Positions 9,601 through 46,299 are shown, numbered from the stretch's first letter. The stretch: 64,000 nucleotides of DNA from Amphiscolops sp. MND2022 (GCA_964187785.1 OZ076411.1:54250001-54314000), one strand, 5' to 3'. Notes: a model not told the origin generated them from the sequence alone. Program-made: numbers and translations.

Positions 9601-12600
9601 GTCCGCAATTTCGACCTAAACTAATTTTGGCTATTTAGTCTTAATTCGGTTGAGCTATTATTTCAGTACAATAATTACAAACGAATCAACAAGCCTTAAT
9701 TAATGGTAATTATTCATGAAGAAGCCAAAACTACCGGTCGAAATTGCGGACGGTTGAAAATGCAATAGGTTGAAACTGTGAGCGGTTGAAATGGCAACGG
9801 TTGAAATTGTGAGCGGTTGAAATGGCAACGGTTGAAATTGCATAGGATGAAATGTCCTGACACCAACAAAAAGTGATGGAATTGCTTTGTGAAAGCATTT
9901 TTTTTTATGTTATTATTTTTACATTTTTAACAATTTACATGTTTTTTTTTCATTTTAACTTTTTAACTGTTAAAAATATTTTTAACTAACAACTTAGCCC
10001 TGCGACGAGTTTTCCTAGATTCGTTTTTTGTTTCCAGTGCAAGCACTTCTTTTCTTCTTGCCCAGTCTGGTGTGGAGTGCGGCTGCCGACAGCTCCATCG
10101 ACATCTCCAACATCGTCTCGGCCCTCAACGACAAGAGTCTCGTGCTCGAACCCGAGAAGAGAGACAAGTCCGTCAAAAACCTCGCTCTTCAGTTCCACAG
10201 GTAGGTCAATGAAACGCATTTCCTGCTGTTCATACTCATTTTGATAATTTTGAAGATCTGCTATCCAAAACCACCTTTCAAATATGCAATACCGAGGGCA
10301 ACGTTTTTGCTGTTAATTCACACAGAAGTTGTCACTAGTTTTTGAGACAAGGAATTTTTTCTAATTCAGTATTCGATATCATACGGTTTTGTATGTTTAA
10401 TTTGTAATTTTTCAACAGTTCAACCAAATTTTTCTGCCAAAAAACAGGTCTTTCGGTTGCATGCAAACGCATACATTTCGATTGTTAAATGCAGGCTTGA
10501 CATTTAAAAATCTCAAAACTGATTTGGAACTGTCTATAAAATAGGGTTTTCTTTTTGCTTTATAATTTAAAAACATTGGCTGATTGCATCGAAAATGGTT
10601 TGGTGCTTATTTAAAATAATAATAAACAATTTCTGGACCGATTTCAGTCGTTTGAGGCTCTAGATCTTAGCACTTAGATTTTGAATAATTCCTCAGTGTA
10701 TTTCATATTTTTCAACTGATTTTTTTTCTTAGCTTCAACATAAAAGCTGAAAGAACAATTTTAGCATGATTTTTTCCCCAAAAAACACCCACCAGCCAAC
10801 CCTGGTTAAATGCTGATTCCCTTCATTTTTCTTCAGATATATCAAAAACCGACGACAGTATTCACGCTCGAATCTCAACGAAGTGAGACGTAAAATGAGG
10901 GAGACAAACAGTTTTTGTCTGGCGTGTGGCAGTAGATACGGAAACTATCTGGGACTGATCTACCTCCTGGCTAAAGCCCTCTTCGTCTTCAATGCCTGGG
11001 CTCAGCTCTTCTGTCTGGACTCCTTCTTGGGGCCCAAGTTCCACGCGTATGGCTTCGACGTTCTCCAGAGCATGTACGAGGGTGTGGATTGGACCAATAG
11101 CCAGCGATTTCCAAGAGTCACTCTCTGTGATTTCGAGGTTGGATTTGCTTCCTGATAATAGAAGCAAGTTGAGAACGTCTCAAGCCGGCGCCCCGCTCAA
11201 GGCTCCAAAAGTGCCAACCAAATATGCTAAAAGGCTGTTTTCATGAAAATTCTGAAAATCTCACAGTGCCGAAAAATTTCCTTTCTACTTAAAAGAGCTT
11301 TTCTTTACTGGGGAAATTTTGAGAATTTTCGAAAAAGTCGCACGGTGCCAATAAAAATGAAAGTGCATTTTTGCCCTAGCAGTTTTTTTGCTTCGCAGGT
11401 AATGTAAAACTAAGGAAAATTTGAAGCGAGGACCCCTTGCTCTCTGTCAGTACACTTCAGTTATTAGGCTAGAAAGTTTGTAAAAAGTGGATCTTTCAGA
11501 GTGGAAGTTGTTATCTTATAGAAAAAGAATAAAATCTTGTTACTGTAAGATTCGGGCACTTTTGCTTCAAAAATTTTCTGTCGACTAAAAACAAGCAGAA
11601 AACGTAGTATCGGCGGCTTTGTCAAGACTCAAAACGCTATAAGTACCTATATTACCAAGTCGCCTTTGGACATAGAAAAGGCTAAAACATAACCAGGCTA
11701 ATATAAGGGGAATAACCAACAAGCAGGGAACGGCCCAAGTCGATAAAAATAAATTGGAAAAAAGTCGCATAATACCGAAAAACGCTGGCTTTTAACAAGA
11801 TTTGAATAGTATTGAAAAAATTATTTGTTGATATGTATCTATATCTAAAAAACCTAATAAAGATAAAGATAAAAAAGCCTAATACCAGACAAAAAATGGG
11901 AATTTTGAACAGTCTCATAGTGCTAAAAAATCTGAAAGGGGGGACCCTCCCGGATTTTTTTACATCCAATTTGTTGCAAAATATCAAAAAAATGAAGACG
12001 GACCCTTTGGAAACATTAAAAAGTTTTCAAAAAAGTCTCACAAAGCCGAAAAAAGGGGGATGGAAGTCTCATAGTGCCGAAAAAAGGGAAAGGGAGATCC
12101 TTCTGCTTTGGAATGGTTTTGTATTTCATGTTAGAGGCTTTGGATGCGTTCAAAATCAAATACAAAGTACTTATGGAAATAGTGCACTGTGCACTAAAAG
12201 TGGACCGATCGCGCTGAACTGACGAAATAAAAAGCCACTGTAAGAGTCGTCCTTTTTGTCCGAAAACGCCGACTAAAAATGAAGTAGAAAAATTGGATTT
12301 TCAACACCGAAGTAATTGAAATTTTTGCTGTTTCCTGTGGAAAAATTTATCAGGGGAAAGTCGCACAGTGCAGAAAAACCCACATATTGGAATAAAAGTC
12401 TCAAATTTTGAAAGGGAAGACTCGTTGAAACATTTTTAACCTCTTTAGATCTAAGGCGTTTTGTAGATATTCGTAGGTGATATTTGTTGACTTTGACTGG
12501 ATTTAACAAACTCACACGAAAAGCCGCTATAATAATCGTATTTCACTTCATGAAGCGCGGACAAAAAAAAACGAAATCCTAGGATTCTATCGATTCTGAT

Positions 12601-16562: not shown

Positions 16563-18496
16563 GTGCTGAACTTTAGTGTTAAGGTCGGAGCCTCGAAGTT
16601 TGAAAACGGGTACTTAACATAACACTTCAATGGAGCTTAAAAATAAGTTTTAAGGCAACTACCATGCTGTTTACTCGATTATTCATCTTTCTCTGTGATC
16701 TCAAATAGCTGTTCTTCTCAACGCCGCAGTTGCTACAAGATTTTTAGTCATGTACTTTGTTTTAGATGGACACTAACAATTAACTTGCAGTGTTTTCTGT
16801 AACTGACTCTTGGATTGTATTAGTATTTGGAACCAAGTTGTATTATTAGTGCTATGGACTTCACGTTAGTGTGATAAAGCATAGTTTGCCGATAGCGGTG
16901 CTTCTCAGATTTTCATGGTTATTTTTTTCCACCTATGAAAATCTGAAACTGAGCCTTCATCGATTCTCTCGTATCTCAAAAATATAACGAATCCGAATTT
17001 TTGTGGTCGTGGAAGTTATGTTTGCATTTTGAATGCAATCTTATACATCTTTTCATTGTATACGATTTTACTTTGATTAACTAAGTAGTGTTTAATTGTC
17101 TCTTAATATTGCTAGTCGGGTTGTTCCGATTTCTTTCACAATATTATTTTGAGGCTATTTTCAATTGTTTTTGATTCTTTGGACCAATTTTCGTTACTAT
17201 CACCGGACCCAACGTTCAATTGAAAAGCGTGCCCCTTTTTTATCCAAACTTTCCAATGGTATTTTTAGTGATAACGTTTCTAAGACTAAAAAGTTGATGT
17301 TGAGTAAAAGCTCAGTTTTGAAAGCATTTGAAAACAGCCTAATTTTTCATCTTTTTTATTAGAATCTTTAGTATATCTTGTAGCCATATGGGCTGTTTTA
17401 CCTTTTAATTAGCTGGAGAATGAGTTCTCCCCTAGTTATGATAATTAGATTGATAGTAATATTGTGGTTGTGTTTATTTGTTAACTTTGTCAACAACGAT
17501 TGTTGCTAGTCGGATAAATGATCGGTAAGAGTCGGGTTTGTTTTAGATGCTCTTTGATTTCTTGTTAGATGACTTCCTAAGGTATTACATTGTGTTTGTC
17601 CGTGTCTATTATACTTGTGTGCGTAGTTTAATATACGAGAAACTTGTTTTGATTTTCCCTCTATCAGAGGTTGAGCCACAGAGGTACGATCGAGGAAACT
17701 TCGAGATGTAGTAAGAAACGTTTTTTGTCATTTTTTGCTGATCGAATTGCTCAAATGTTTTTCTCAAGCTTTGCTTCCAACCAAAACTTTTCTGGAAGAT
17801 TATTCAACTTGAAATTTTCAATTGCGACAACTTCGTCTGAGAAATATGGTAGCAAAAATGCCAGAATGCGCAAATTGACTATTTCCAAAAGAATTTTTCT
17901 TGAATTTAAATTCTCGAATAAAAAACAAGTACCTGGAATCTGATTAGTTGGAGCTGATTTTTTTGAGATTTCGTTCAATTTTGAGGAATATTTGTATGAA
18001 TATTAAGGTAAGTTAAGCTTGGATTCATTAAAGTATATGTCAGCAGACTTCAGATGAAAAGCTTCGAACAACAAAATCGCTTTGCATGATGAACCTTTCA
18101 GCTGTTACAAGAGATTGGAGTAACTACATTTTGCAAAAAATCTGTTGAATTGGAAGTTTGTTCCTTCGAGTCATATCATAGGATCTGAACAATTTCAACA
18201 AAAATTGCAAAATCTTTCATATAAAAAAGAGTTATTGACAGTGCTAATTGGGTTCGTGAGCTCTCACATCGCTCTTCAGCGATGAAAAAATGGCTTTATG
18301 AGGCACCTAGATCGGCATAGAAAGCAGAACATTTTGATGATTATAGTAACAAAAAGGTGAAAACTTTTTCTCGGAACTTTTCGAAAAATGTCTTCAGAAA
18401 GTGGCACAGAGCGAAAAGTCCCCAAGAGAACCTCTATGCTTTGTATCTGCTACAAATTGAAAAGGTTAGTTTGTTTTCTTTAAAAATTGCCTCATG

Positions 18497-18999
18497 TGTT
18501 GTAAACCGGTGATTTTAGTTACTTAGGACTCGCTTTCTAACTTTGCAATAAGTCTCAAAAAATTGTTATAAAGTGAAGGTAAATTAGAAGTGGGGTGTTT
18601 ATAAGATAGAATAATTTTCTAAGTCGAGCATTTCAGACTTTAGAATATTTCTAAGTTAAAATTCAGGACTCTTTGTCAGCTGAATTTAAGGGAGAGTTTT
18701 AAGTCAGAGAGCAAAGTAAGGAAAGAAAGAGAGGAGAAGAGAGCGAGTGAATTCTCAGTGTTCCGCGTTGGAATGGGTACCTGTATTTCTCTTTCCAGCT
18801 CAGGACAGTTCTACTGTCGCGTGGCTTTTTCCTATTGGCTGAGCATTAAAGGAATTTGGGAATTGCAATTTCCTTTTAGCGCGTTGCTATTCGCTTAGAA
18901 ATTAAAATGCTCTAATAATTCCGCTTTGGAAATTATTGTCTCTGAGTCAATTTCCTCTGTTGGGAAAATGAACTAAATTAGAAATAGCGCATTGCTACA
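18497..18999 (-). repeat. 3' LTR of the Gypsy element (503 bp)
   Basis: Direct repeat of 30220-30724, differing by about 3 substitutions and a 2-bp indel on visual comparison; CCAAT box AGCCAATAG on the - strand near 18833-18841. Confidence 0.95.
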
Positions 19000-19012
19000 A
19001 CTCACCCCAGTT
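19000..19012 (-). promoter_or_regulatory. Polypurine-tract-like sequence (AACTGGGGTGAGT) abutting the 3' LTR
   Basis: G-rich run immediately 5' of the 3' LTR start TGTAGC on the - strand. Confidence 0.55.
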
Positions 19013-19212
19013 GACAGAGAAGACTGCATTAGTCGTAATACCAAAATCAAATAATGGGTATAATGGTTATAAAATGGATATAATGAATAATGGGTAAAGC
19101 TTTATGTAAAGTTTACGTTAAGGTAAAGAAATTTTAAAAGTTAAATATGTTTAAGCAAATTATCATATTAAAAGAGTTTCAATTTTTGTTGAAGAGCAGT
19201 TTATAGGGGCTT

Positions 19213-20772
19213 TTAATGATTCTTTCCGGTTGGGACTTGTTTCGTGTTGACAGGCCAGGGTAGTCTAGTGCATTTGGTTTTCCATTCTGGATCCTTGTCG
19301 AAGTTATAGGTGATGGGGTAGTATACAGTTGATAGTCTGGCTTTTACATTTCCTCGTTTTAGGTTAAATATGGAATACTTCTCATACTGTTGCCAATCCC
19401 AGTGGTCTGCATGGGTTAACAGGGCGTGTAGGCATTTTTCTAATTTTTCATATTGTTTCCCATCTACTGCTTGGATTAACTGGATAGCCTCTGCACGTTG
19501 AATGTCAATCTCGACTCTCATTATTTGCAGTTGTTTGATCAATTTGTCGATGTTAGCTTGGTCTTTGAGCCTGGTGTCCTTTTTATCAAGGATCTCCTTG
19601 AACTGTTTATTTGCCTCATCGAAGGCATCAAGTTTTTCTTTGAGAAGAATGTTTGTTTTGTTGGACTCCAAGAGTTGACTTTGAAGTGACTCCGCTTTGG
19701 AGGTCGCTTCTTCAATTTGGCTCTTCAGTTCCTTGTTCTCATCGAAAAGGTCTGATGTTACTCTTTCGGAGATCTCTAACTTAAATTCTGCTCGAGTTGC
19801 ATTCTCTTTAGCCATTGCTCGTGATCGATTGGCAGAGCAGAGGGCATTCTTTAAGTTGGCTAGTTCGATATTCAGACTACGGTTTTGCTGTTCAAATTCG
19901 GCAATTGCGAATTCAGTTTTCCAGAGTGCAGCGGTAAGATTGGTATCAGGTGTGTCTATCCACTCTTCATTTTTTGTTTGTGTGGTCGCATTGACTGTTG
20001 GTTGTTTGTTGTGTGAGATTTGGGAATTATCATGATGTGATTCCTTGGAAGCTGGTGTACTGATTGACGAGCTACAAGTACTGGCGTTGTCGTTAAACAG
20101 GGGGTTTGGGTCGTCAGGAAACGCGGTGATTACACCAAAGGGGGCTTTAATTAGAGAATCAATTTGATGGTTGTAGATTACGTACTTCCTTTCTTCGGGA
20201 AGACGATCTTTTAGTCTCCATTGATTCATTTCCTTTGGTAAATTAATGTTTATAGCGGGGCAGCGTTCAGGGGGAATGACAATGGAACAATTCAACTTCT
20301 TGTTAACAAGTTCAATTCCTTGTTTAGGTGTGGCAAGGAACCATTCATTATGGTCCTTCCTTATACCATACTTCAGTAATTGAATGAATTTTGGGTCGTC
20401 TGTATCTATATTTGTCTCTCGGGACTTTTGGATATCAAGTCTTTCTTTAAGGCTTGGAAACCATTTTTTTTCTTTGGGTAACCCGTCGTCGAGTCTCATT
20501 GACACGCACGAGGGGCCTTTAATTTTCCCATCACCGAGTCTCTTTGACAGGCGGTTAGGGTCTAAGTTCATATCATTTTCCAATTTGGATGTCTTTTTCG
20601 GCCAATTTGGCTCAGGAGCTTCAGAGGCTATTCTTTTGTTAGCCTGCCTGAAGGGTTTGGGGAAGCAGGGCTTTACCCGCTTAGTTTTTCGTGATCGGAA
20701 GTTGACATTAGGAGGGCGTAAGTCGTTGGGGATAAAACCTTCAGGTTCGAACAAGTCAATAGCATCCGACAT
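19213..20772 (-). CDS. ORF4 of the Gypsy element: intact 519-aa protein of unknown function with a long central/C-terminal coiled coil
   Basis: ATG-initiated uninterrupted 1560-nt ORF between env and the 3' LTR, same sense as gag/pol/env; heptad-like L/I/E/K/Q pattern about aa 280-445; no signal peptide or TM segment seen. Confidence 0.85.
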   Translation of the reverse strand: MSDAIDLFEPEGFIPNDLRPPNVNFRSRKTKRVKPCFPKPFRQANKRIASEAPEPNWPKKTSKLENDMNLDPNRLSKRLGDGKIKGPSCVSMRLDDGLPKEKKWFPSLKERLDIQKSRETNIDTDDPKFIQLLKYGIRKDHNEWFLATPKQGIELVNKKLNCSIVIPPERCPAININLPKEMNQWRLKDRLPEERKYVIYNHQIDSLIKAPFGVITAFPDDPNPLFNDNASTCSSSISTPASKESHHDNSQISHNKQPTVNATTQTKNEEWIDTPDTNLTAALWKTEFAIAEFEQQNRSLNIELANLKNALCSANRSRAMAKENATRAEFKLEISERVTSDLFDENKELKSQIEEATSKAESLQSQLLESNKTNILLKEKLDAFDEANKQFKEILDKKDTRLKDQANIDKLIKQLQIMRVEIDIQRAEAIQLIQAVDGKQYEKLEKCLHALLTHADHWDWQQYEKYSIFNLKRGNVKARLSTVYYPITYNFDKDPEWKTKCTRLPWPVNTKQVPTGKNH

Positions 20773-21020
20773 TATAAATTATATTTGTAGTTGAATATGA
20801 AAAGTGAATATCAAAAGCAAGAGAACTGGATAAGTGGAGTAACTGGAGAATAAATAGTTGGCATTAGGCTTGAGGTTAAGTAGTTGGCGACTGTACTAAA
20901 TTTTAGAAAGCGAGTTATATAGGGTTTGTAAGTTAATTTGTGTTTGTGTCATTATGTTTGTGACCAGAAGAAAAACATCAACAATCACAGTGGTATCTAT
21001 TCCAAGAAGCCTTATCACTT

Positions 21021-23419
21021 TTAAGTAAGAGAAATTTCACTAAAGAGTAAACGTTTTTTGTAAACTTTATGGTGGGGTAATGGAGCATTTCGATTACTGT
21101 TGTTATTTGAGGTACTAGGAGCATTTTCATTGACAGTAGTCGGAGCATTTCCAGAACTGTTATTGCCATTGTTAATTTGTAAAAAGGTATTTAATGTACT
21201 AGGAGCATTTCCTGTTTGATTTAATACATTTGAGTCAGCTCTTTGTCTTTCATTAAGAGTAGAACCAATCGCAATCGGATTGTTCAAGAGATGTACTTGA
21301 GGATACAAAAGAGTCGGATTTTCTTCGTACATTGGTGCAGCTATAGGTCTATTGCCTGCAGGGTTCTGCGAGAAACCATTTGAAATCCTTTTATTTTCCT
21401 CATTTTCGTACATTGGAGTCTGAAGTGAGAGAACAAATAAATTAAAAGTTGCGCCTACATAGTTCTGACAAAACCAAAAGTGGCACCAGAAACTTTTCGA
21501 ATTTCAAGTCCTCGGAGGACGATGACAACAACATCAATAACGAACTTTACCAAAAGGAAACAAGCAAAAAAGTTTCCTAAACATTGGATAATATATCCCA
21601 ATTCGCCAAAAGTTTCCTTGAATTTATCGACGAAAAAAGAAGGCGTCAACAAGTGATCCAACAGAAGTCTATCATTTAGACTCAAAAGACGTTCCAAGTT
21701 TCCCGATTCGGAAATTCGAACTGAGTTACCTCGAGTCAAAATAGTCCGAGTAAGCTTCTTCAATAATGTATCAGAAGCAGAGTTGTGGATTACATTATCC
21801 CAAAAATTTTTCATTTGATTTGGGGTGTACATTCCAGCACGCTTGGTGTCGAAAGTTGGAAACTGAGTAATATGTCCAAGTTCAGTTGGCTTGAACAACA
21901 AAGGTTTATTGAAAGGCATGGGCTCAGGTAAAAGTTGGTACCAGGAATTGTCATTTTCGAGATCAAGTTGAAACACATTTGTGTAATCTCCCAAACAGGG
22001 TATCTCGGATGCAAAATCATAAGTCTGACGGGTGATAGGATCTACAAATTTCGTAGACCGTTCAAACATGATCGGGATTCGATCATAACATTTATCAAGC
22101 ACTTTCAAGGGCGACAAAAACTTCGGACAATGGTACAACCATGCGACACTTCCATCGGTGTCAAGGAACATAGACCTGTTTCCAGTTAACATGTAACCGG
22201 CAAGTCTTGTGTTTTGCATTGCTAACATTAAAATAGTTAACATTTGAGTTCGTTCGAGTTCGCATTGACTCTGCAGAAGTGTCATTTCAGAATGCCTCAA
22301 TTGCTTCGCATTGAAGTACATTATATAGTCTAACTTTGTTCCCAAGTGCAATTCATAATCAATTTCATCCGCGCCGACGGTATGCCAAGGCTGTGCACCA
22401 ATCCATTGGCCATTTGATTTGCTGAAAGATAATGACGAATAAGAGACCTGGCTAGAGTTGTCAATGGAAAATTGGTAGGCGTTAAAAGCATGTTCTTTAG
22501 TTCGTAGTTCTCCACCTGGCATTGCGAAACCTCCTTGGTAAGTCACGAATAGACTCTCAAAATTTGTTTTGAACAATCGTTCAGGTTTCCCACATAGCTC
22601 ATAGCTTTCAGGGAAGACTTTTATTTTGAGGTTCATTCCTCTGCCAGTCACATTATATTCGCTGATTAGGAAAAATTGGTTTTCGTTTCTGTTCGTTGAC
22701 AATGGATACTTAAGCATTTTTGCTTCCTGAGTGAGGATTTTTGTCATCACGCAGTTTTCGGGAGTATCCCACGTGTAAGCGAATGGGTCTAAAGTAGTGG
22801 TCTCGCAACCACCCTCCATTAAAAGACATGGCAATTTTTGTTTATTTGGATTGGAAACCTCTTTGGTTCCGTAATCGAATGTCAAATTCACACGTTGCAT
22901 GAACGTCTCGAAGGTATAGTGCTGTACTTGACCACTTGAGCAATGAATGGTTGTGCGGACAGATTGTCCATCATTGAAATTCGATTGTTTCTTTGTATCG
23001 AATTCAATTGGGGCATCGAAGTTTTCGCTAAAAGACGAAATTTTAATTTTGTTCGTCTTTGATGCCTGTCGGCACATTTCAGGGGTAACGATGAGGTCAT
23101 ACGTTATACTATTTTGAGTATGAACGTAGGACGAATGCGAAAACATTCCACAGTTGTAGCGGAAGACATGGGCCTTGACAGAACACATTGTTGCTGCCAG
23201 GTCAGTCCGGTAGTTCTTCTGATAAAGTGTGATAGTAGCCGGCGTGACATACAAGTTTTCTGGTGTAATCTTGCATTCTGCTACCTTATTCAGGGAGTAC
23301 ATTCGATTGTCTTGCATTTTTGTGCAATCATAATGAGATACAAACAAGTTCTTTGACACATTGTCAAAGTCATCACTTGCACAAGAAAAAGGAAAAAGGA
23401 AAAGAATAAAGTAAAACAT
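21021..23419 (-). pseudogene. env: env-like glycoprotein (chuvirus G / herpes gB-type, class III fusogen-like); about 799 aa when a 1-nt deletion near 21456 is repaired
   Basis: Signal-peptide-like MFYFILFLFPFSCA; Cys-rich ectodomain with YDC, CGMFSH, QCELER, WLYHC and CYDRIP motifs; C-terminal hydrophobic anchor. ORFs 21455..23419 and 21021..21413 join as RTM-L-GATFNLFVLSLQTPMYE if one base is restored. Confidence 0.8.
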
Positions 23420-23530
23420 CTTGTATAAATAGAGATAGAAACAGTAGAAAGTTATACAAATGCGCTTTGCATAGAATTTGTTTGGAATGATTTGGCGAGA
23501 GAGAGTAGAAAAAGAGAAATGATAATAATA

Positions 23531-26500
23531 TTAGAAATAAGGCTTTCCGTACCACTCTCTAGGAAGGTTTCGTAACGTTCCAGTGTTTCTTGAGCGTGGA
23601 GCAGCGGCAGTGCTATTTGAAGGAATATTGTTTGGGTTAGTACTAAAAGTGCGAGGCAAAGGACTAGGTGTGATTGGCTGACTGGTTATTGCTGGCGATT
23701 CTCTTTGAAATGAAATAGGGGTTTGAGGAGATGACTGCGGGATGCCAGAGTCGGGGGAGCTCGCTAAGAAATTCGGTGTCGAATGAGCAGAGCCGCATTT
23801 AGCAGGCGAACTATAAGTCGTGTTCATCCTGGATGGACCAGGAGCGTCGGGAAAAATAGGTAAGTATTCTTGTACGTGCTGTCGTTCAGCAAGCGTTTCA
23901 ATTGGTTTGTTCAATTCGGAGAGTCGATTCTTTGCATACTCGTTGTAAAAACGTTCGGTTCTGTCGTCGTTGACAGGCTTTTCGTAATTGGACAATAAAG
24001 TCGGTAAATCATTGTCACGAGGGAAGACTTCAACGAGATGATTACGATGAACGACTTGAATCCTCGTTGGATCCGAATCGAGCGCGACTTGGTAGTTCAC
24101 TTTCGTGATCACTTTAGTCACAGTGTACGGTCCACTTCGGAGCTCGCACAACTTTTGTGATTTCCCGAATGGGACTTGATGATTTTCGAGTAGTACTTTT
24201 TGTCCAATTCGTAATGGTTTAGCGAGTTTGTACTTGTTTCGGTACGGCAGAGATCGATGATTCGCTTTACGAACTTTGGTATATACTTTTCTGTATATGT
24301 TTTTGAATTGTGTTTCTCTGTGTAACAAATCCAACGAACACTTTGACGTCAGTAAGGAGTCAATGCAAGAATGATTCGTGTCTTTATTCATGTGTGAATG
24401 GTCAGGTAAAGACTGACAGAATTCGGATTGACACAAATCATTGTCGTCTCTTACGAGACCTAGTTTCAACGAAATCGGAATTTGTGGTTCAAATCCGAAA
24501 GCAACTTCATAGGGAGTTGCTCCTGTACTGGCGTTCACTGAAGTGTTATGAGCAAAGGCGAATTGAGGAGCCAGCTTGGCCCAATTATTTCCTGCTTCGG
24601 AAAGATAGCATCGAAAGTATCGACTGAGGTGTTTGTTTTGGATTTCAACCTTGCCGTTAGTCCAAGGGGACCATTTAGTTTTTGGGGCATGCGTTATGCC
24701 TAAATCCAAGAGAAAGGTTGAGAAATCAGTGCTCATGAACGACGTAACTCTATCATATACAAGTTTTTGAGGAATACCAAATGAAGTAATGAAAGAAGTC
24801 ATGGCTTCAATAGTATTACTTGCATCAGTCGACTTGACTGGGTAAACTTGTATGAATCGTGAGAATGCGTCAATCACAACTAAACAGTGATGTTTTCCGT
24901 CACTCATGGGATTCAAAGGTCCTTTGTGGTCGATGTGAACAGTGTGGAAGGGATAAGGAATTTCTTCTCCCCATTTTTCGTTGGGAGCGGTGTTTTGATC
25001 CTTTCTGATTTGTTTATTTTTTCGGCAGATCAGGCAGCTCTTCGTTAGAGTCCTTACCCATTTGTACATACCAGGCCAATAGAAAAATCTTTTCAGAGAC
25101 GAAAGTGTCTTTTCACATCCTGGATGTCCTGAAAGCCGATGATCGTGTGCAACATTGAAAGCTTCAATGAAACAGTTGCGGGGCAGACATATTTGTCGTG
25201 ATGAATGCTTGCTAGTTTTACAAACAAGGTGTGTTTCTTCGTCAATGAACAATTTTTCAAATTGATTTGAATAACCGAGTAATCCTTTGCATTGTCAGGA
25301 CTCAACATCTTTTGACGGCACTTTGCCTTTAATTATCCATGATTTAACAGTGTTCAGGCTGGGTCATCCTGTTGGTTTGCCAAAATATTGTTTAAATCTA
25401 GATTATCGGTAACGAGTTTCAATGGTTGTAGTGAGTCTTGAATGGTGAAAATGGAGAGGATGAAAGGAACATCTTCTTTAGATGCATTTACAACCTCTGT
25501 GTTCAATAGAGGATCTTCGTCAGAAGCCTCATTGTCACTATTGTCAGTTTCGGAGTCAATTTCGGAATAATGATTTTCCTGAACTTCGGCTTCCACTACC
25601 ATTGGTGGGGTTTGCCATTTACGTCGAATGTTGATGTCCTTACCTTCACGGAAGGAGTCAGAAACATCAAAGAGCGCTTTCGGAGAGTTTGGATCGTATA
25701 CCGTACAAATAAGATCTGTACCATCATTTTTCAGGTGAAGTTTCTTGGTTTCACCCAGGTGAGTGCAAACAATTGGGTAAAAATCATCATTGGCGCTTTC
25801 AGCAGGGCTGTTGTGGTCTATCAGATACTGAACTTCGTGTCCACTTTGCTGAAGAACTTTATATCTTTTGGAATTTCTTTGTGAAGTAATTGGTGACCGT
25901 TGAGATCTTTCAACGACACATTCCTGCTCAGCAAATCTGGAAACGCTAAATTCTTTCCAGGGGTCCAAATGATTTGCAAATTAGTGAACTGAGTGATAAT
26001 CACTTGGTAGCGGAAGAATCTATGAGATAATCTTCCTCTGCGTGCCCATAGATACAGGAGGGGCTTGTGATCACAGAATACCTTGATGGGATGCCGAGAT
26101 CCAATTATGAAATGCTCATACGTTTGTAGAGCAGAAATGATTCCACACAGTTCTCGATGTAGCGTTGACATCTTTTGTTCATCCTTTGTAAAGACTCGCG
26201 AATTGAAGGAAACTATACGTTTCCCGGAAGGAAAATCTTGAATTAAGATTGATCCCGTACCAATACTGGAGGAGTCGACATGGATGTGGAACGGATACTT
26301 TGGGTTTGGTACAGCTAAGATGGTTTCTTCGCTGATTCTATTTTTTATGTCTTGGAACAAGTTCTCATGCTCTTTTGTCCATTTGAATGGAGTGTCATCT
26401 CTCAGAAGTTCGTAGAAAGGTTTCGAATCTACATGTAGATTTTTGATGAAGGTGCTGTAGAAACCTAAACTTCCTAAGATGCGCATTACATCTCTTTTGT

Positions 26501-28472
26501 TCTCAGGGCTTTTCAGGTTTTTCAAATCTTGTACCTTTTTGGCTACTGGCTGGATTCCTTTGTCGGAAACAATGTGTCCAAGAAACTGAACTTTCCTCAA
26601 GAACAGTTTTGTTTTGCTCGGTGCAGCTTTCAGACCTGATGATCTCAAGCACTTGAAGTATGAATCCAAATTATTCCACATTTCTTGTTTGGTTTTTGCC
26701 TGTAAGATAACATCATCAATATATGTTATCACTTGTTTCTTGGCTATCATTTCAGCGAAATGAATAGTCATTATCCGGCTGAAGAAGTTTGGTAGTCCGC
26801 AAAGACCATAGAATCCTCGTTCGAACATGTACTGTTTTCCACCAACAATAAAGCTTGTCAACTTCTTCGTATCCTCGGTGAGGGGTACTTGGTTATAGGC
26901 GGAAGCTAAATCACTCGTTGTGTAATAAACTCCATCAAGTCGTGTCAGTAACATTTGTACTGGTTCAAGGGGCCATGAGTAGTTAGTCAAGTCAGTGATT
27001 GAGTTAAGATAACGTGCGTCAATCACAAGCTTCACGGTATCTCCTTTTGGTAAAATGATGATAGGGTTTGTGAATAGGGAACCCATTTCCACATCATTTC
27101 CCATTTCTCGAATGATTCCAGCTCGTTGCAGTTCATTCAGAAGAATTTCAAGTCGGTCTCTGTAGTGCAGAGGGACTTTTGAGGGCTTTTGTTTTCGTAA
27201 TTCGGCGTTTTTCTTCAATTGTACATGAAATGCTTGTGTGATTTTTCCAACGTCATAAGTAAATTTTGAAAACACGTCATTGTTTTCAACTAAAACTCGG
27301 AGAAGATGTTGTAATTCACGGTCATTTATATCAGATTCAGAAAAGTCGAACTTTTCTAAAAAGTTGCGTTCGGCGGGACTAAACTCGGCGTAAAATTCAT
27401 CGTCGAGTTGTTTCCTTTTAATATCGGAAGCAATTTTGGGCATTTTCGGTTGTAATGATTTCACCTCATTGGAGAAATCAGTAGCCAATTCATTTTGCGA
27501 AATAGCGCTTTCGGCCATTTGTTTCCGTGAATCAATTTCCGCTAAGGAATAAATATACGGTTCGGTCGAACAAACGTGTAAATCCTTGTTCCATTGAGAC
27601 TCAGAAGTTTTGAGATACTCAATGAAAGCGACATTGTCAACGACACTCATCAATTGCGAGGTCTCTTGGACGCTGTCGAGCAATGTGTATCCAAGAATTC
27701 CTTTACGAATAGTAATACTATTCGGGTTCGGATTGTTCAGCATTAAAGGATATTTCGACTCGTCTTGTGAGCAATACACGTGATACGTGTAAATGCCAGT
27801 ATCTAAAATGTCTTGGTGTAAACGGAAACTTGTTCCCTGTTTGAACAAATGTTTATCTTCATCTCTAGCAATTAAACTCAAAACTCGGGTCGAATACGGT
27901 GCAATTGTAATGTCTTGAGTCAATTCTACTGAATTAACCTGGGAGAAGTAGGGAAAAGGCTTGTCTAAATAAGGTGACAGTTTAACACATTTGCCGGGGA
28001 AGACCGTTAAAATTAGCATTGGATTTCTCAAGGTAATGAATTCACCAAAATTTGCCAAAAAATCCATTCCAAGAATGTTCATTCTCGCCTCGGGGGAATC
28101 AGACACATAAACAGTGTGTTCGATCACACAAGAATATTCTACGTCAAACGCAGACTGAATAATAGTTTTCCCTTTCATGGGCATTGCGTGTCCATTAGCA
28201 GCTAAAGGCGATTTCTCGAGAGGCGTTACAACTAAAGGCTGAATTTTGTTAATCTCAGTGAATGTCTCAAGGTTGATAATGGAGCACGTTGCGCCAGTAT
28301 CTATGAGAAATTGGGTGCTAAGGCCATTATTTTTATTTTTGTCTCCGACGGCGTATTGAAATAATTCTATATAAAACTGTTGGCCGGACGTTCCAGCAGT
28401 TGGAATGTGAGGGGTTTCATTTGATTCCTCACTTTGTTGGTTCGGAGACTTGATTAGTTTAAAGGATTGCAT
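23531..28472 (-). pseudogene. pol: Gypsy pol (aspartic protease, RT, RNase H, integrase), disrupted
   Basis: Protease FLIDTGAT; RT YIDD; RNase H VDSS...ELCG...CDH; integrase H-H-C-C (HDHRLSGH...CLIC), D-D-E core (HIDHKG, VYDR, NGKVE) and GPY. Lesions: frameshifts near 25855 and 25360, TGA at 25295-25297. Confidence 0.95.
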
Positions 28473-29557
28473 GACTGCAGAGTGTCATACAAAGAATTCA
28501 CCTTGTCAGGCCTTGCTTCGAACCGAACAGCTCCAGAGTAGCTGTTACTTCTGCTTCGATAGCCATTTGAAACATAAGGACTATTACTTCTGCCTCTTTG
28601 GTCGTTGGACCGATTGTCCGATTGTGATGTGTTATTATTCGGAGACTTGGGTCGACTTGGATAGTTTTGCGCATATGTTTCTTTTGGTTGGGGAGGAGGT
28701 TTTTCCTCGTTTTCTTTCTTCTTTTTCAATGTCCAACAGTACTTGATTGTGTGTCCGGATTTTTTGCAATAGTTGCAAAATCTAGTAAAGTCTTGTTTCA
28801 TTTTTGGGTTGTTCGGGTCATAGGTAGCATTGATTTGATGATTTTTCACCATGTTGGTGATTTCATTCAATGTTTTCTCTATGTTAGTGAAACGGGCGTC
28901 CATTGTCCCTGTTGAAGTTTGGGAACTTGAAGGTTGCAAGCCGGACATTTCGGCACTCACAACTAAACTCATATCTTTATTTATGATAAGAGTCTGTAAA
29001 GCGTCCCATGATTTGTTGGGATCTTCAATCATTGCTTGATGGGCTTTCTGTTTAAGACCCGGGGGCATTAAGCCTCTTATGAAGTAGTCTTTGTACTTCC
29101 CAATTCTCTGATTTTCGCATGCTGTGATAGCCTCTTGATTCGCATTTGACGGTGTTGGCCAGCCTTTGTCTACCAACGTTTTTATTCTGTGGATGTAACT
29201 TTTTATATTTTCATCAGGCTGTCTTTTCAGATTCTCGGCCTAAATTCGGAATCTATATTGCATTTTTCCGTCCGTGAACCTGTTTATGAACTGTGTTTTC
29301 ATTTCTTCCCATGTTAACGCAGCGTCTAGTGAATCAAACCACTCAGCCGCAGGTCCGCGTAGGACTGATCCAAAAAGTGCTTTTCTACGGTCGTCATAAA
29401 CGGTTTGTTGGCCGTTCTCATTTGCCGTAGGTCTACTTCCTAGCGAGAAGCTGATTTTCTTTTCTAACAAACGAATAAAGGCAGTTGGATCTTCACTTGA
29501 GTCAATTCCAATGAATTTTTCTAATGCTAAGTCAGGGTACGCTACAGTGTTTGCCAT
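28454..29557 (-). pseudogene. gag: Gypsy gag with one in-frame TAG (29240-29242) and a CCHC zinc knuckle
   Basis: Retrotrans_gag-like LRGPAAEWF...TWEEMKTQFINRF; knuckle CNYCKKSGHTIKYC (CX2CX4HX4C); ORFs 29240..29557 and 28454..29176 are in the same frame across the stop. Confidence 0.9.
28457..28463 (-). promoter_or_regulatory. -1 programmed ribosomal frameshift heptamer U UUA AAC at the gag/pol overlap
   Basis: Gag ends CCT TTA AAC TAA; X XXY YYZ heptamer in the gag frame, with the pol ORF open in the -1 frame (F-K-L-I-K-S-P). Confidence 0.8.
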
Positions 29558-30199
29558 TTGTCTATTTAATCACGTTTATTTTGCTCCTTTTTTTCACAAT
29601 TTACAATTTTTGTTATTATTTCTGGCAATAACAGACTGGTTTTTTGTGTAGAAGTTTCTTTGCTCCAATACACATATAGAAATTGTTCACAAAGGAATCT
29701 CTTTGATCCTTTCGCAAATATATATTTTTGGAGTTTTGTTGCTCCTTTGAAACGGACAGTTTCTGCGTATTTAAGCCTTAACACGGAATGCTAGATTCCA
29801 AGGCAGCAGGCGAGGTGAAATATGGACTTTCCAATTTCTTGCGAAACCTCGCTGGGATCGTGCAATTTAAGGAACACTCGTGTGTCAGAAATAAATTTCG
29901 TCCACGGAACCCGCACACGCTAATACCGAAGCTAGCGTTAGTGGATACTGTTTAGACTCAGTACCAAGAGTATGAATTTTGTTTAGTATCTGCTTTAGAT
30001 TACTAAATGTTGCAAAAATTGAAATTTTGTTTAGTATCTGCTTTAGATACTAAGTGTTGCAAAAACAAGAATTTGAATTTTCTCAAAAATATTTGCTTTA
30101 AATATTTCAGTTTTGCAAAATAGGACCCACCACAGGGAAAAGAGATTTATTTTGTACGCTCGGTTTTATGGTCGTACAAATTGCGGAGTGATTTTGTTC

Positions 30200-30217
30200 T
30201 TTGCTCTGGTCGCACCA
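30200..30217 (-). promoter_or_regulatory. Primer-binding-site-like sequence TGGTGCGACCAGAGC 2 nt after the 5' LTR
   Basis: Begins with TGG (complement of tRNA CCA) directly downstream of the LTR end ...ACAACA-TC; cognate tRNA not identified. Confidence 0.7.
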
Positions 30218-30219
30218 GA

Positions 30220-30724
30220 TGTTGTAAACCGGTGATTTTAGTTACTTAGGACTCGCTTTCTAACTTTGCAATAAGTCTCAAAAAATTGTTATAAAGTGAA
30301 GGTAAATTAGAAGTGGGGTGTTTATAAGATAGAATAAATTTCTAAGTCGAGCATTTCAGACTTTAGAATATTTCTAAGTTAAAATTCAGGACTCTTTGTC
30401 AGCTGAATTTAAGGGAGAGTTTCAAGTCAGAGAGCAAAGTAAGGAAAGAAAGAGAAGAGAAGAGAGCGAGTGAATTCTCAGTGTTCCGCGTTGGAATGGG
30501 TACCTGTATTTCTCTTTCCAGCTCAGGACAGTTCTACTGTCGCGTGGCTTTTTCCTATTGGCTGAGCATTAAAGGAATTTGGGAATTGCAATTTCCTTTT
30601 AGCGCGTTGCTATTCGCTTAGAAATTAAAATGCTCTAATAATTCCGCTTTGGAAATTATTATGTCTCTGAGTCAATTTCCTCTGTTGGGAAAATGAACTA
30701 AATTAGAAATAGCGCATTGCTACA
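30220..30724 (-). repeat. 5' LTR of the Gypsy element (505 bp)
   Basis: Near-identical to 18497-18999; TG...CA ends; flanked by the CATG TSD. Confidence 0.95.
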
Positions 30725-30767
30725 CATGCAAGAAACCAAAAGATTTTTTGCACGTTTGCAAGCATAA

Positions 30768-31260
30768 ACAATACGGGAATGTCGGCGCTATATCTAAGTC
30801 TCAAAAAGGGCAAAGTTTTTGAAATTGTAAAAGAGGGACCTTTTGGGCTCTTTGAAAATCCAGTTTGTTTGCAAAATATGAAAAGAATTGAACGTAAAAT
30901 GAGAACTGTGAACAGTCTCATAGAGCCGAAAAATGTAAAAGAGGGATCTTTTGGGCTTTTTCAACATCCATTCAGTTGCAAAATATCAAAAAATTGAAGG
31001 AGGACCCTTTGGAGACATTAAAAGATTTTTGGAGAGAGTCTCACAAAGCCGAAAGGGACGGGGAAAGTCTCATTGTGCCAAAAAAATGGAAAGGGGGACC
31101 CTTCTGCTTTGCATTTGTTTTGTCTTTCATATTAGAGGCTTTGGATGTACTTTTGGTAATAAGTACTTTTGGTAAAAGAGCACAGTGTACATACAGGGTG
31201 AGAAAAAACTAGCCACTGTAGTAGTCGGGCACTTTTCACTAGGAAAGCGCCGACTAAGAA
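30768..31260 (-). mobile_element. HINE family A copy
   Basis: GTCGGCGCTATATCTAAGTCTCAAAAA at the left end; AGTCGGGCACTTTTC...GAAAGCGCCGACTAAG at the right end. Confidence 0.65.
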
Positions 31261-33141: not shown

Positions 33142-33637
33142 AACAAGACGAGAACGTCTAAAGTTGGCGCTATGTCTAAGGCTCAAAAAGCGCAAAACTT
33201 TTGTAGTGGAAAAAAACTTGAAATTTTTGAATTTTTTTCTCTTTCGAAGAATGTCGCATAGTGCCGAAAAATGTAAAAGGGGGACACTTTTGGATTTATT
33301 AACATACATTCTGTTGCAAAATATCAAAAAACTCGAAGGGGACCCTTTGAGGACTATAAAAAATTTTCGAAAAAAAGTCGCACAGTGCCGAAAAAAATCA
33401 AAAGGGGGGACCCTTTAGTCTCGTGTCCGATTCTGTCGGTTACGTTAAAAAAGTAAAAAAAAATGAAAGGGGGGACCCTTTGCACTAAATTTGGCTTGGC
33501 CGGACTTGGCTTTAGGTGGTTTCAGGAATGTATCTAAAAAGTGGACCGATCAGTGTGAGGTCTGTGGTCTGAAGAAAAAGAGGTCAACGCTATAGTCGGG
33601 CCTTTTTTCCTTAAAAGGAAAACGCGCCGACTAAAAA
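33142..33637 (-). mobile_element. HINE family A copy
   Basis: AACAAGACG-AGAA-CGTCT stem-loop plus AGTTGGCGC at the left; AGTCGGGCC...GCGCCGACTAAAAA hairpin at the right. Confidence 0.7.
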
Positions 33638-35857: not shown

Positions 35858-38800
35858 AACAAGACACCCGCTGAGCAGCGAGATAATTTCCGCCCCAAAC
35901 TGTTCTAAAACTATTTAAACTTGAGGCTCAAGAATAGTCAATGCACTATGAAAAAAAGTTCGAAGAAAAAAGTTTTGATTCATCTTAGTCCAGTTTTAAT
36001 AGCAACATATAATTTATTGTTTCTGCAATAGCTTCCCACTTTTTGTATTTTCTGCACTATGCGACATACCGCGTGAAGAGAAACTTTTCGAAGACTATTT
36101 TCGAAAAACATCTTTCGCAAATTTTAGTTTTTGAGGTTTTCTGAAAAGGAAATATGTTCCGCGATTCTTGGAGGTGACCACTTTGTCACTTTTGATACTT
36201 TGGAACTGATGAGTTTTCTTGATGATTGTGGAAAATGCCGCTTTTCATTTTTGCTTTTCGGTCATTCTCAGGTTTTCTTCTCTTTTCCCTTTGAAGGTTT
36301 ACTCCATATTTAGTTAATTTGCATGGATCTTTTCGAATATTAAATATTTCACAAATAATGTCGAAAAAAAAATTTACGTTTTCATATAAACTTTTTGAAA
36401 ATTAGGCACAAAAACTTGTCTGATATCTTTCCGAAACACTACCCGGCAGCTACACGTTTCAATCCTGAGCCTATGGGTTTCCTGACTGAAGTTAATTTTC
36501 GGAAAGGTTCCAAAGATGTTACTTGGTTGTCGAAAATTGAGAAAATTCGGAAATTCTGACACCTTTGTTGTAAACTCGAAGAACTTCATCGTACTTTCTT
36601 TCCCAAATTGCGTTTTGAATACCGCATTGTTTCAAAGTTTAGGTAAATGGAATTTCTATTCCACAAAATTTTTGTGGTTTGAAATAAAATTTGGATTGAT
36701 TTGTCGAAAAAAGTGCTTTTTTGTCGTTTGTTGGATTTTGGGGTGTTTTTGAGGCCAATTCCAATATCATTGCAGTTATATATTCAAAAATGCCTACTGG
36801 ATACCGGGATTAGTCTATACAGAGTTTTGTAAACCTCGTTTTGCAAGGAAGTAGCTTAAAAGTTGTACAAAAAGGTGCATAAAATGTTTTAAAAAATGAA
36901 AATTCTCAGTTTTTGAAGTATTTGGGTAATTCTGAGCAAGTTTTCTGTCACAAAATATGCCAATTTCTCTTCAAAAACGTGCTTCGGACATAAATTTATC
37001 ATCCTGAAGTTTTGGAACTTTTATCTTTATAGTTTTCCAATGTCAAAATGTTGTAGTCCCAAAAAAATTCATTTGAAATGCCAGTTATAGGCAAAATTTC
37101 TACTTTTTGCGGTCATTTTTGACCATATTCCAAACCGAAGACTGCAGGTGTTTCCTCAACAGCCTACTGGATTATGATTTCAATCATTGTTGAACGTTTG
37201 CTAACATTCTGACTCCAAAACGATTCAAAAAGTACATATAATATGCATAAAAAATGAAAAGATGAACTTTTTCGAATTTTCGACTCATTTGGAGTCATTC
37301 TGGAGTGTTTTTGAAGCAAAACGCTGCATCGTACTCTTGAAATAATGTACTGCATAGCTTTTGTTTTTCGTTTTGACTGTGTTAAAATTTAGAACGGAAG
37401 CTCTCGGAAATTGTACAGAAATTGCATCAAAAGGACAGAAACTTTAAATTTATTTTTTTTCTGAGTCAGTTTGAGGCAATTTGTGTTAGAAATTGTATTT
37501 ATCTCTCAACTGAAGCTAACTGAAACGAGGATTCTTTCTATTGTTTTTAACGGCTTGATTGACAAAAAGCGCATAAAAACACTGAAAATTTGAAATTTTG
37601 GGTTTTTTCTCATTTTGTGTGTCAATTTGAAATACTTTTCACTTAAAAAACAGCAATTATCTCCTCGGAAACGCTTCTGGACAACAGATTTTTGTCAAGT
37701 TGAGTGTGTTCAATATTCCAATCCACGAAGTCTGTCATAAATTTGACAAAAACTGCATAAAAACTTAAAATTTTGGGTTTTTTTATTTCGGTGCGATTTG
37801 AGATATTTTTCACTTTGAAAACCGCAATTATCTCTTCATAACACTACTGGACACTTTAATATGAAGACAGTTTTCTACATTCCAATCAACGGAGTCCGTC
37901 GAAAATTTGATGAAAATTGCATAAAAACTTTGAAAAGTGGAAAACTTTGGGTTTTTGTCATTTTCGGTTCCAATTTGAGATATTTGAAAACAGCAACTAT
38001 CTCTTCGGGAAAGCCTACTGAACAACGAATTCCTGCCATGTTGAGCCTTTTCAACATTCCAATCTACGGAATCCGTCGAAAATTTGATAAAAATTGCATC
38101 AAACTTTGTAAATTGGAAAACTTTGTGTTTTTTGTGAAATTCGGTGTCAATTTGAGATTTTTTTAAACTTAAAACTGCAATTATTTCTTCATAAATGACT
38201 ACTGGACAACGAATGTTTACCTTGATGACCGTTTTTGACATTCCAATACACAAAGCCTATCGAAAATTTGGCAAAAATTGCATGAAAGATTTGAAAAAAT
38301 GAAAATTTTGGGTTTTTGTCATTTTCGGTTCCAATTTGAGATATTTGAAAACAGCAACTATCTCTTCGGGAAAGCCTACTGAACAACGAATTCCTGCCAT
38401 GTTGAGCCTTTTCAACATTCCAATCTACGGAATCCGTCGAAAATTTGATAAAAATTGCATCAAACTTTGTAAATTGGAAAACTTTGTGTTTTTTGTGAAA
38501 TTCGGTGTCAATTTGAGATTTTTTTAAACTTAAAACTGCAATTATTTCTTCATAAATGACTACTGGACAACGAATGTTTACCTTGATGACCGTTTTCGAC
38601 ATTCCAATACACAAAGCCTATCGAAAATTTGGCAAAAATTGCATGAAAGATTTGAAAAAATGAAAATTTTGGGTTTTTGTCATTTTCGGTTCCAATTTGA
38701 GATATTTTTCATTTTGAAAACAGCAACTATCTTTTCGGGAAAGACTACTGAACAACGACTTCCTTCCATGTTGAGCCTTTTCAACAATCTAATCCACGAA

Positions 38801-39160
38801 GTCTATCGAAAATTTGACAAAAATTCATAAAAACGTTTAAAAACCAAAAACTTGGGATTTTGGTCATTTTGGGGTAATTTTTCTATTAAAAAACCGCAAT
38901 CATCTCTTCATGAAAGACTACTGGACATCAAATTTGTTGCTTGTTGACTCGTTTCAACATTCTAATCCACGATGTCTCTCGAAAAAGTGACAACAATTGC
39001 ATAAGGGCGTTGAAAATTGGCAAAAATATCTACAAATACATATCGCAGGAAGCAAAATTTACGTGAGTTGAGTTCTACGGGTAACACCCATTAAGGTAAG
39101 TATATTTTTTGAAAAAAAATATTTTCCTTTCCCATATGAAATATGGGCGAAAAATAGTAA
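35858..39160 (-). mobile_element. HINE family B, long copy carrying an internal tandem array
   Basis: Left ~140 bp is the reverse complement of about 8975-9117; right ~110 bp is the reverse complement of about 8641-8790. Confidence 0.6.
37559..39000. repeat. Satellite-like tandem array, about 8 monomers of 164-185 bp, with a near-identical 361-bp dimer duplication
   Basis: Monomer starts (TTGA/GCAAAAATTGCAT-like) at about 37559, 37743, 37907, 38084, 38268, 38445, 38629, 38814 and 38987; 37947-38345 is nearly identical to 38308-38706. Confidence 0.9.
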
Positions 39161-45500: not shown

Positions 45501-45885
45501 CGCCTTCCCATCTCGTCAACGGCAGAAGTCTTTTGGGTTCAGCCGTCGAATTCCCTGAAAGCAGTCTGCATTCAATCCAACGACGACAACAATTTCTGAA
45601 AACACTGGTCGATCAATTTTGGGCAGTGTGGTCAAAAGAGTATTTGATAGAGCTGCGACAGTTTTTCAATTCCCATCAAAAAATTTGTCGAACCCGCGTC
45701 CAAAAGAAAATGACATAGTATTGTTGCATGAAAAACGCCCTCGTCATTGTTGGCGCATTGGAAAATTGTCAAAATCAATTATCGGACGAGATGGTCAAGC
45801 CAGAGCTGCTGAAGTGATTTCATCTGAGAAAATTTTCCGGAGGCCACTGCAATTGATTTCACCCCTTGAAATAATTCAAGAATAA
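39516..45885 (+). pseudogene. Pao gag-pol polyprotein with multiple stops and frameshifts
   Basis: DUF1759-type KLPKVELPKFDG...KFTYLKASL; three Cys-His knuckles; degenerate protease LLDKCSQQSYI; RT DIEKAFLQ and YVDD; Pao RNase H FVDAS, TIPRLEL; integrase VDFAG, SDNG, WWGGFWERLV; DUF5641-type WSKEYL tail. Confidence 0.92.
40905..40935 (+). repeat. (GAA)n microsatellite inside Pao gag
   Basis: Run of about 9 GAA units, producing the poly-E and poly-K stretches in the ORF track. Confidence 0.85.
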
Positions 45886-46054
45886 CAATTTTTGCTCTGA
45901 AAATTAAAACTAACATGAAACAAGGTGAAATCAATTGGTACGGTAAATTTGCTTTATCTTGCATTCATATCAACAAGTGGAATCTTTAACAACCTGCCGC
46001 GCCTTTTGTCAATGTGGCTTTGCACCCATTCCTTCTTCAATGCTGGCGGGAGGA

Positions 46055-46299
46055 TGTTGAATTTCATTCACTATTTCAAACTCGGACTGAAAACTTTTCG
46101 TACTTCAAGCTCGGACTGAAAACACTTGGATTGATTTCAGTATCTTTAGTATTCATTCATTTCTGATTCATTCTGTGATGTTACATTCATTCTTGTTACA
46201 TTGAAAAGCTCTTATGAATCGAAGACATTAAGAAAAAGATAGAGAACGATTATTCCCGAAAGCTAAAATTGCCCTAAAAGAAACCTTTTTTCTGAAACA
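46055..46299 (+). repeat. 3' LTR of the Pao element
   Basis: Follows the PPT; lacks one of the ~29-bp subrepeats present in the 5' LTR. Confidence 0.88.

Follow-up and report, generated by a model that had tools for sequence, protein, structure and literature searches.

A conserved fourth gene 3' of env in a clade of Ty3/gypsy retroelements with a gB/chuvirus-type envelope glycoprotein

Background

Ty3/gypsy retroelements that carry an envelope gene (env) are, as recent work has shown, both ancient and widely distributed among animals, and have been described with three genes. A glycoprotein of the gB type serves as env in Ty3/gypsy elements across Metazoa, the 'ancient errantiviruses' (Chary & Hayashi, eLife 2026, PMC13524379), and a chuvirus-like glycoprotein has been captured by BEL/Pao and gypsy elements of mosquitoes (Dezordi et al. 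2020, PMC7642597). Here we describe an element of this kind from a 64,000-nucleotide stretch of DNA of Amphiscolops sp. MND2022 (GCA_964187785.1 OZ076411.1:54250001-54314000; hereafter the window), in which an additional open reading frame (ORF), ORF4, is placed between env and the 3' long terminal repeat (LTR). The element has in common with those that carry a gB-type env (PMC13524379, PMC7642597) its LTRs, a 4-bp target-site duplication, gag, a pol gene of the order protease (PR), reverse transcriptase (RT), RNase H (RH) and integrase (IN), and a class-III glycoprotein gene 3' of pol; by this last feature its sequence places it among the gB-type env-carrying Ty3/gypsy elements. Whereas the elements of both reports are described with three ORFs, the present one has a conserved fourth gene after env; a fourth gene is not mentioned in PMC13524379, whose authors state that they did not search for ORF arrangements of other kinds. 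ORF4 is a real and previously undescribed fourth gene in a clade of Ty3/gypsy elements with a gB/chuvirus-type env.

In complex retroviruses it is the tas/bel and tax/rex genes that stand 3' of env. Like the accessory genes of these viruses (spumavirus tas/bel1 and bet, deltaretrovirus tax/rex), ORF4 follows env and precedes the 3' LTR, codes for no membrane segment, includes a basic cluster and is probably expressed from a subgenomic mRNA, which in the case of ORF4 we infer. Its product shows no similarity in sequence or fold to Tas/Bel1, Tax, Rex or Rev (Pfam, PDB, Foldseek against PDB, and BFVD), and in contrast to the products of tas/bel and tax/rex it is larger and built round a coiled coil of 160 amino acids (aa). 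Another accessory protein, CERV of the Caenorhabditis elegans element Cer1, has 517 aa, bears a nuclear localization signal (NLS), multimerises and is needed for export of the genomic RNA; it has a leucine zipper and globular domains on flexible linkers, and no homologues outside nematodes (PMC10309623). Likened by description, CERV and ORF4 are both accessory proteins of invertebrate Ty3/gypsy-type elements, of about 517 and 519 aa, with a candidate NLS. CERV differs in being encoded by five exons that share the gag reading frame, and Cer1 is without a functional env (PMC10309623). Extra ORFs 3' of pol include ORF3 of bdelloid rotifers (PMC5408684) and the aORFs of plants (PMC7264820), which these sources, in the parts that bear on them here, present as lineage-specific and often of unknown function; on the same accounts they differ from ORF4 in having been captured repeatedly, or in belonging to plant elements without env.

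Results and discussion

ORF4 is conserved in position and under purifying selection

ORF4 lies inside a 12,228-bp Ty3/gypsy LTR element on the minus strand (window 18497-30724), with the gene order gag, pol, env, ORF4, purine tract, 3' LTR (Table 1). As the earlier note on this DNA had recognized, it forms an uninterrupted frame of 519 aa from ATG to TAA, for which the strand (minus) can now be supplied. From the base composition of the sense strand, stop codons are expected to make up about 5.7% of codons, and at this frequency an open run of 519 codons would arise by chance with P ~5e-14.

A search of 5.8 billion proteins returned 111 homologous clusters, of which one stems from an SRA run and all others from ENA assemblies; none has Pfam domains or a source name, and about 24 of the 111 are full length (510-519 aa) and 60-86% identical to ORF4. 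When 1.84 billion representatives were searched exhaustively with HMMER, 211 hits were obtained, and the best 150 of these 211 are apparently mostly fragments of the ORF4 family. Distant relatives of full length are 28-37% identical (P0111, 418 aa; P0306, 416 aa; P0307, 432 aa; P0260, 587 aa). In the P0260 cluster 8 of 9 members are full or near-full length, as are 11 of the 15 listed members of cluster P0006. When profiles and single sequences were used to look for distant or named relatives, few further clusters and no informative name came to light, and no relative of ORF4 was found among the 2.9 million contigs of IMG/VR.

Genomic context was examined for ten related loci (L001-L008, L010 and L013). 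The earlier note had asked whether homologues always sit 3' of env: at all ten of these loci, where context was sufficient, the ORF4 homologue lies downstream of an env matching PF24664, or of its remnant, on the same strand, and a gypsy-type pol lies upstream wherever the 5' part is present. No context-examined hit was found outside such an element. The ten loci come from three marine-type ENA assemblies and one SRA run, and represent at least four deep lineages. The window itself is contig ctg185777 of ENA assembly ERZ25074608, which alone carries two deep lineages (the window and L003; L010), and other homologues come from ERZ26859043, ERZ25071359, SRR24961302, one Tara Oceans marine contig and one JGI contig (Ga0126343). 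Because ORF4 is 28-37% identical between deep lineages in which pol and env are 49-54% identical, it is as old as the split between these lineages and evolves faster than pol and env; by this sequence comparison, ORF4 had its place just after env as early as the common ancestor of lineages that today are about 50% identical in pol and env.

The relatives include intact copies. In L005, gag-pol, env and ORF4 are all intact and the LTRs are 100% identical. In L003 (ERZ25074608 ctg184766), gag, pol and ORF4 are intact, env is internally deleted and the 507-bp LTRs are 100% identical, which suggests recent copying of an env-defective, ORF4-bearing element. At a decayed locus, L004 (ERZ25071359 ctg24255), the ORF4 homologue stands about 4.8 kb past what remains of env; many short ORFs lie in between, and a nested insertion may be present.

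The ratio of nonsynonymous to synonymous divergence (dN/dS, or omega) in ORF4, for pairs with unsaturated dS, is 0.07-0.17 by the NG86 method, and 0.09-0.23 by LWL85, YN00 and maximum likelihood (ML), apart from one outlying ML value of 0.57. Third positions differ 3-5 times as often as positions 1 and 2, and omega is similar to that of gag, pol and env (0.03-0.2). Only a Ser/Thr-rich linker is relaxed among the regions of ORF4: purifying selection keeps the gene over its whole length except this one linker. Sixty-two alignment columns are invariant across four deep lineages, with 29 in aa 96-224, 11 in aa 408-433 and 17 in aa 435-507. With dN/dS at about 0.1 rather than near 1, and with no match to a host gene captured in this copy only, the earlier proposal of an accessory gene is not refuted. 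Because its position has been kept in deep lineages and purifying selection on it is strong, we hold with high confidence that ORF4 is a functional accessory gene of the element, and not a chance ORF or a single-copy capture.

A fourth gene under selection across about 50% pol identity means that at least one clade of Ty3/gypsy elements with an env resembles complex retroviruses in its gene content, a state that would have been reached independently. Knowledge of the role of ORF4 would show by what means such elements govern their expression, or escape control by the host, in marine invertebrates, and the gene is a marker for this clade, of use to annotators.

Predicted architecture of the ORF4 protein

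The full-length AlphaFold model of ORF4 is poor overall (predicted local distance difference test, pLDDT, 63), with one long helix clear in it, and the protein can be divided into five regions (Table 1). All the features that the earlier note had read from the sequence agree with this division: a basic, disordered N-terminus, a globular block at about aa 100-225 (structured at aa 93-221), a Ser/Thr-rich linker, a heptad-rich coiled coil of about 165 aa, a Trp/Tyr-rich C-terminal module, and no signal peptide or transmembrane (TM) segment.

At the extreme N-terminus stands an acidic/hydrophobic motif, followed by a K/R cluster (aa 26-34 in the window copy); the two occur in this order ahead of DDGLPK, where the N-domain starts, in all lineages, and the sequence around them is otherwise unconserved between lineages. 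The N-domain, when modelled alone, is beta-rich and confidently predicted (pLDDT 83, predicted template modelling score 0.75), and its invariant columns include DDGLPK..FP..RL.IQ..RE and TAFP. The linker varies in length and sequence among relatives. It is followed by a single helix at aa 276-434 with pLDDT above 90, in which hydrophobic residues recur with a period of 3.5 and one heptad register runs across about 13 heptads; its C-terminal end (aa 408-433, with a RAEAI motif) is highly conserved. The C-module is predicted to consist of short helices and a hairpin, and ends in LPWP. Maximum 19-residue hydropathy is 0.66, with no TM segment or signal peptide in ORF4, so that the product is predicted to be a soluble protein without a membrane segment. 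It very probably oligomerises through the long coiled coil. Of the oligomeric accessory protein proposed in the earlier note, the accessory gene stands by position and selection, and oligomerisation is made very probable by the coil model and the heptads.

Table 1. Features of the ORF4-bearing element and regions of ORF4 in the window
Feature	Window position	Strand	Remarks
5' LTR	30220..30724	-	505 bp, TGT...ACA
3' LTR	18497..18999	-	503 bp, TGT..ACA
Target-site duplication	30725-30728 and 18493-18496		CATG, 4 bp; flanks element
Primer-binding-site-like sequence	30204..30217	-	TGGTGCGACCAGAG; 2 nt after 5' LTR, read from sequence
gag	28454..29557	-	capsid-like region and CCHC knuckle; 1 in-frame stop
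pol	23531..28472	-	PR-RT-RNaseH-IN; 2 frameshifts and ~3 in-frame stops
env	21021..23419	-	PF24664 (Monjiviricetes_fusion), 4.4e-40; 1 frameshift
env-ORF4 spacer	20773..21020	-	pyrimidine tract and CAG acceptor-like site ~75 nt before ATG
ORF4, whole	19213..20772	-	519 aa, intact
ORF4 aa 1-92	20497..20772	-	predicted disordered, pLDDT <40; omega 0.08-0.22
ORF4 N-domain, aa 93-221	20110..20496	-	one helix and seven strands (predicted); omega 0.04-0.12
ORF4 linker, aa 222-273	19954..20109	-	Ser/Thr 15/52 residues; omega 0.13-0.49
ORF4 coiled coil, aa 274-434	19471..19953	-	~160 aa (predicted); omega 0.04-0.08
ORF4 aromatic C-module, aa 435-519	19216..19470	-	Trp/Tyr/Phe 12/85 residues; pLDDT 50-60; omega 0.06-0.25
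3' untranslated stretch	19000..19212	-	ends in polypurine-like GGGGTGAG (19001-19008) next to LTR

Searches for families and folds agree with the earlier note, which had recognized no family. Pfam assigns none to ORF4, whether 31 members are scanned at E up to 0.1 or 10 members at E up to 1, and returns sub-threshold coiled-coil noise; a match of one member to Herpes_BLRF2 (0.0024) is not significant after 31 scans. PHROGs gave no match, and the PDB, queried by sequence and with profiles, yielded coiled-coil hits only (E of at least 0.036). Foldseek found nothing at E up to 0.001 for the full ORF4 model against PDB and BFVD, and no significant fold in PDB for the N-domain model (best E 0.067), for which small SH3-, Tudor-, Agenet- and KOW-like barrels appear below significance. 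The N-domain, confidently modelled and with no fold relative detected in these searches, is a candidate for a new fold or family. ORF4 was also considered as a copy of gag, pol or env, to which it has no similarity.

The 3' part of the element is more diverged than the rest

In every pair of copies the block made up of the env tail, ORF4 and the U3 part of the LTR is 3-4 times more diverged than gag-pol-env. In this 3' block the nucleotide identity is 76-89%, versus 93-97% in gag-pol-env, and dS is 0.6-0.95 versus 0.10-0.25; between the window copy and L003 the figures are 87.7% in the 3' block versus 97%. The higher divergence extends to synonymous sites and to neighbouring non-coding DNA. 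An editing gradient (G-to-A) toward the polypurine tract was considered as its cause and set aside, there being no G/A excess in the substitution spectrum. The ratio of transitions to transversions is lower in ORF4, and together with the absence of a G/A excess this points to older divergence rather than editing. The pattern suggests older 3' cassettes that may have been exchanged by recombination.

The diverged block extends from about position 9500 to the 3' LTR in L002, L006 and L008, and over 18497-21400 in the window. Compared with L003, the window copy is a clear mosaic, 97% identical in gag-pol and 84-88% in the LTRs and 3' block.

A possible role in the nucleus, and its alternatives

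We hypothesize that ORF4 regulates the expression of its own element. Its protein would be translated from its own subgenomic and probably spliced mRNA, as are genes 3' of env in complex retroviruses, would enter the nucleus by means of the basic cluster, and would oligomerise via the coiled coil. Once there it might activate the LTR, as the N-terminal acidic/hydrophobic motif resembles an activation motif; or it might aid nuclear export of unspliced genomic RNA, like Rev, Rex, or CERV of Cer1. A nuclear regulator is favoured because of the N-terminal motif and K/R cluster, the acceptor-like sites, the position 3' of env, the oligomerising coil and the lack of a signal peptide or TM segment. 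Besides the acceptor-like site in the window copy (Table 1), a TTTCAG acceptor-like site stands 12 nt upstream of the ORF4 ATG in all four L002-type copies, and such a site also precedes the ATG in L001; in the leader, inspection by eye for a splice donor gave nothing convincing.

Several points weigh against this role. The searches (Pfam, PDB, Foldseek, BFVD) linked ORF4 neither by homology nor by fold to a known regulator or to any other protein, and no recognizable nucleic-acid-binding motif was found; the faint SH3/Tudor-like resemblances of the N-domain lie below significance (E of at least 0.067); and the predictive value of short acidic motifs, K/R clusters and AG dinucleotides is low. 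Counted against intact relatives, gag, pol and env are broken in the window copy and ORF4 is unbroken, and this intact state is not significant alone because about 7 lesions in about 8.4 kb lead one to expect about 1.3 in 1.56 kb, with P(0) ~0.27. A real fourth gene that is also a nuclear regulator is, taken as one statement, a proposition that falls a little short of probable, and the nuclear mechanism for itself is put forward tentatively.

A structural or assembly adaptor, matrix- or tegument-like, is an alternative that we consider unlikely: the coil would link the Gag shell to the Env tail, or particles to cellular transport. The Gag of Ty3/gypsy elements is without a matrix domain, ORF4 accompanies a PF24664 env at each of the ten loci, the env of these elements has a long Asn/Ser-rich tail, and many adaptors are laid out as a long coil plus a conserved terminal module. 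However, ORF4 shows neither a signal for membrane binding or lipidation nor similarity to matrix or tegument families, its acidic motif and K/R cluster fit a nuclear protein better, and in L003 gag, pol and ORF4 are intact although env is internally deleted (a single case, in a locus chosen for its intact ORF4).

Improbable, too, is a counter-defence factor directed against host silencing by Piwi-interacting or small interfering RNA (piRNA/siRNA) or against innate restriction. The three- to fourfold greater divergence of the ORF4-bearing 3' block than of gag-pol-env would fit such a factor, as would a linker that is relaxed and variable in length, and Tudor, Agenet and SH3-like barrels are among the weak fold hits. 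But these hits are not significant, omega is low in all structured parts, with no positive selection seen at the available resolution, and synonymous sites and neighbouring non-coding DNA are also affected, so that the divergence is no evidence of adaptive change in the protein. A bolder version has similarly little probability in our judgement: that ORF4 and the adjoining U3 form a fast-diverging, recombining regulatory cassette, in which ORF4 would be a transactivator of its own LTR or an antagonist of small-RNA silencing, on a fold not seen before. If true, ORF4 would be the first regulatory or counter-defence gene to be described in an env-bearing invertebrate Ty3/gypsy element, independent of the accessory genes of vertebrate retroviruses.

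It is very unlikely that ORF4 comes from an RNA or DNA virus, as a phosphoprotein-, nucleoprotein- or matrix-like gene taken up along with the glycoprotein. ORF4 adjoins a Monjiviricetes-type glycoprotein gene in all lineages, and its layout recalls the phosphoproteins of Mononegavirales, which combine a short N-terminal motif and disorder with a coiled coil for oligomerisation and a small module at the C-terminus. Compared with these, however, ORF4 has an extra beta-rich N-domain for which phosphoproteins offer no counterpart, and no partner N or L genes; a phosphoprotein without a partner nucleoprotein and polymerase has no obvious role. The Pfam scans of 31 and 10 members brought out no viral family apart from coiled-coil noise, and neither BFVD by fold nor the IMG/VR contigs held a match. 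The earlier note's suggestion of co-acquisition with the glycoprotein, or of a matrix- or phosphoprotein-like factor, is unsupported, no similarity in sequence or fold to any viral protein having been found. As for a chance ORF, or a host gene newly captured by this copy and without function for the element, it is refuted by the minute probability of so long an open frame, by the position conserved in deep lineages with omega of about 0.1, by the occurrence of all context-examined hits (among the best 150 of 211) inside such elements, and by the lack of likeness to gag, pol or env.

The host element

By its LTR ends, target-site duplication, pol order and gypsy-type integrase, the element is assigned on sequence features to Ty3/gypsy. 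Its two LTRs, when aligned, differ by three mismatches and one 2-bp indel. The gag gene has 98.6% identity (tblastn) to the intact 367-aa gag of L003, a weak Retrotrans_gag match and a CCHC knuckle of the form CX2CX4HX4C. The pol gene, 96.6% identical to the intact 1647-aa pol of L003, gives Pfam matches in the order gag-asp_proteas, RVT_1, RT_RNaseH, Integrase_H2C2, rve, Integrase_p58_C and SH3_Tf2-1. By its Pfam match env encodes a class-III gB/chuvirus-like fusion glycoprotein, with a signal peptide and a C-terminal TM segment visible. A frameshift leaves the Asn/Ser-rich cytoplasmic tail as a separate ORF of 130 aa (21021-21413, minus strand). Relatives have a single env ORF of 752-796 aa (compared here with the 777-aa env of L002 and the 796-aa env of L008), and the 654-aa ORF read as env is only part of the gene, the 130-aa ORF being the env tail in another frame.

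Long A-rich, purine-rich tracts occur in the env-ORF4 spacer of L002, L006, L007 and L008 (about 9830-9900) and of L001 (5345-5405), and could be internal polypurine tracts or a signal related to polyadenylation; where these two lineages have purine-rich tracts, the window copy has an A/C-rich stretch. At the other end of ORF4, the junction of purine tract and LTR (GGTGAGT/TGTAGCA) is identical in the window (19001-18993) and L010 (11620-11636), lineages whose ORF4 is only about 35% identical. Short dispersed or near-tandem repeats stand just outside the 5' LTR (30822-30977, 30915-31029 and 33253-33367), and the element may have inserted into another repeat.

Other features of the window

No tRNA or Rfam match was found within the window. 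A second retroelement, of BEL/Pao type, occupies 39743-45718 on the plus strand, with ORFs of 411 and 1101 aa that match DUF1759, DUF1758, RVT_1 and Peptidase_A17, followed by integrase zinc-finger fragments; this stretch is the part of the window with high GC content and high skew. Given the known distribution of BEL/Pao elements, its presence points to a metazoan host. Directly past the BEL/Pao ORFs lies a direct tandem duplication of 5.8 kb (45769-51579 and 51574-57380) with 99.2% identity between its copies, which could represent very long LTR-like repeats or a segmental duplication. At 37559-39002 an internal repeat of about 1.1 kb, with 83% identity and an offset of about 350 bp, suggests a tandem array.

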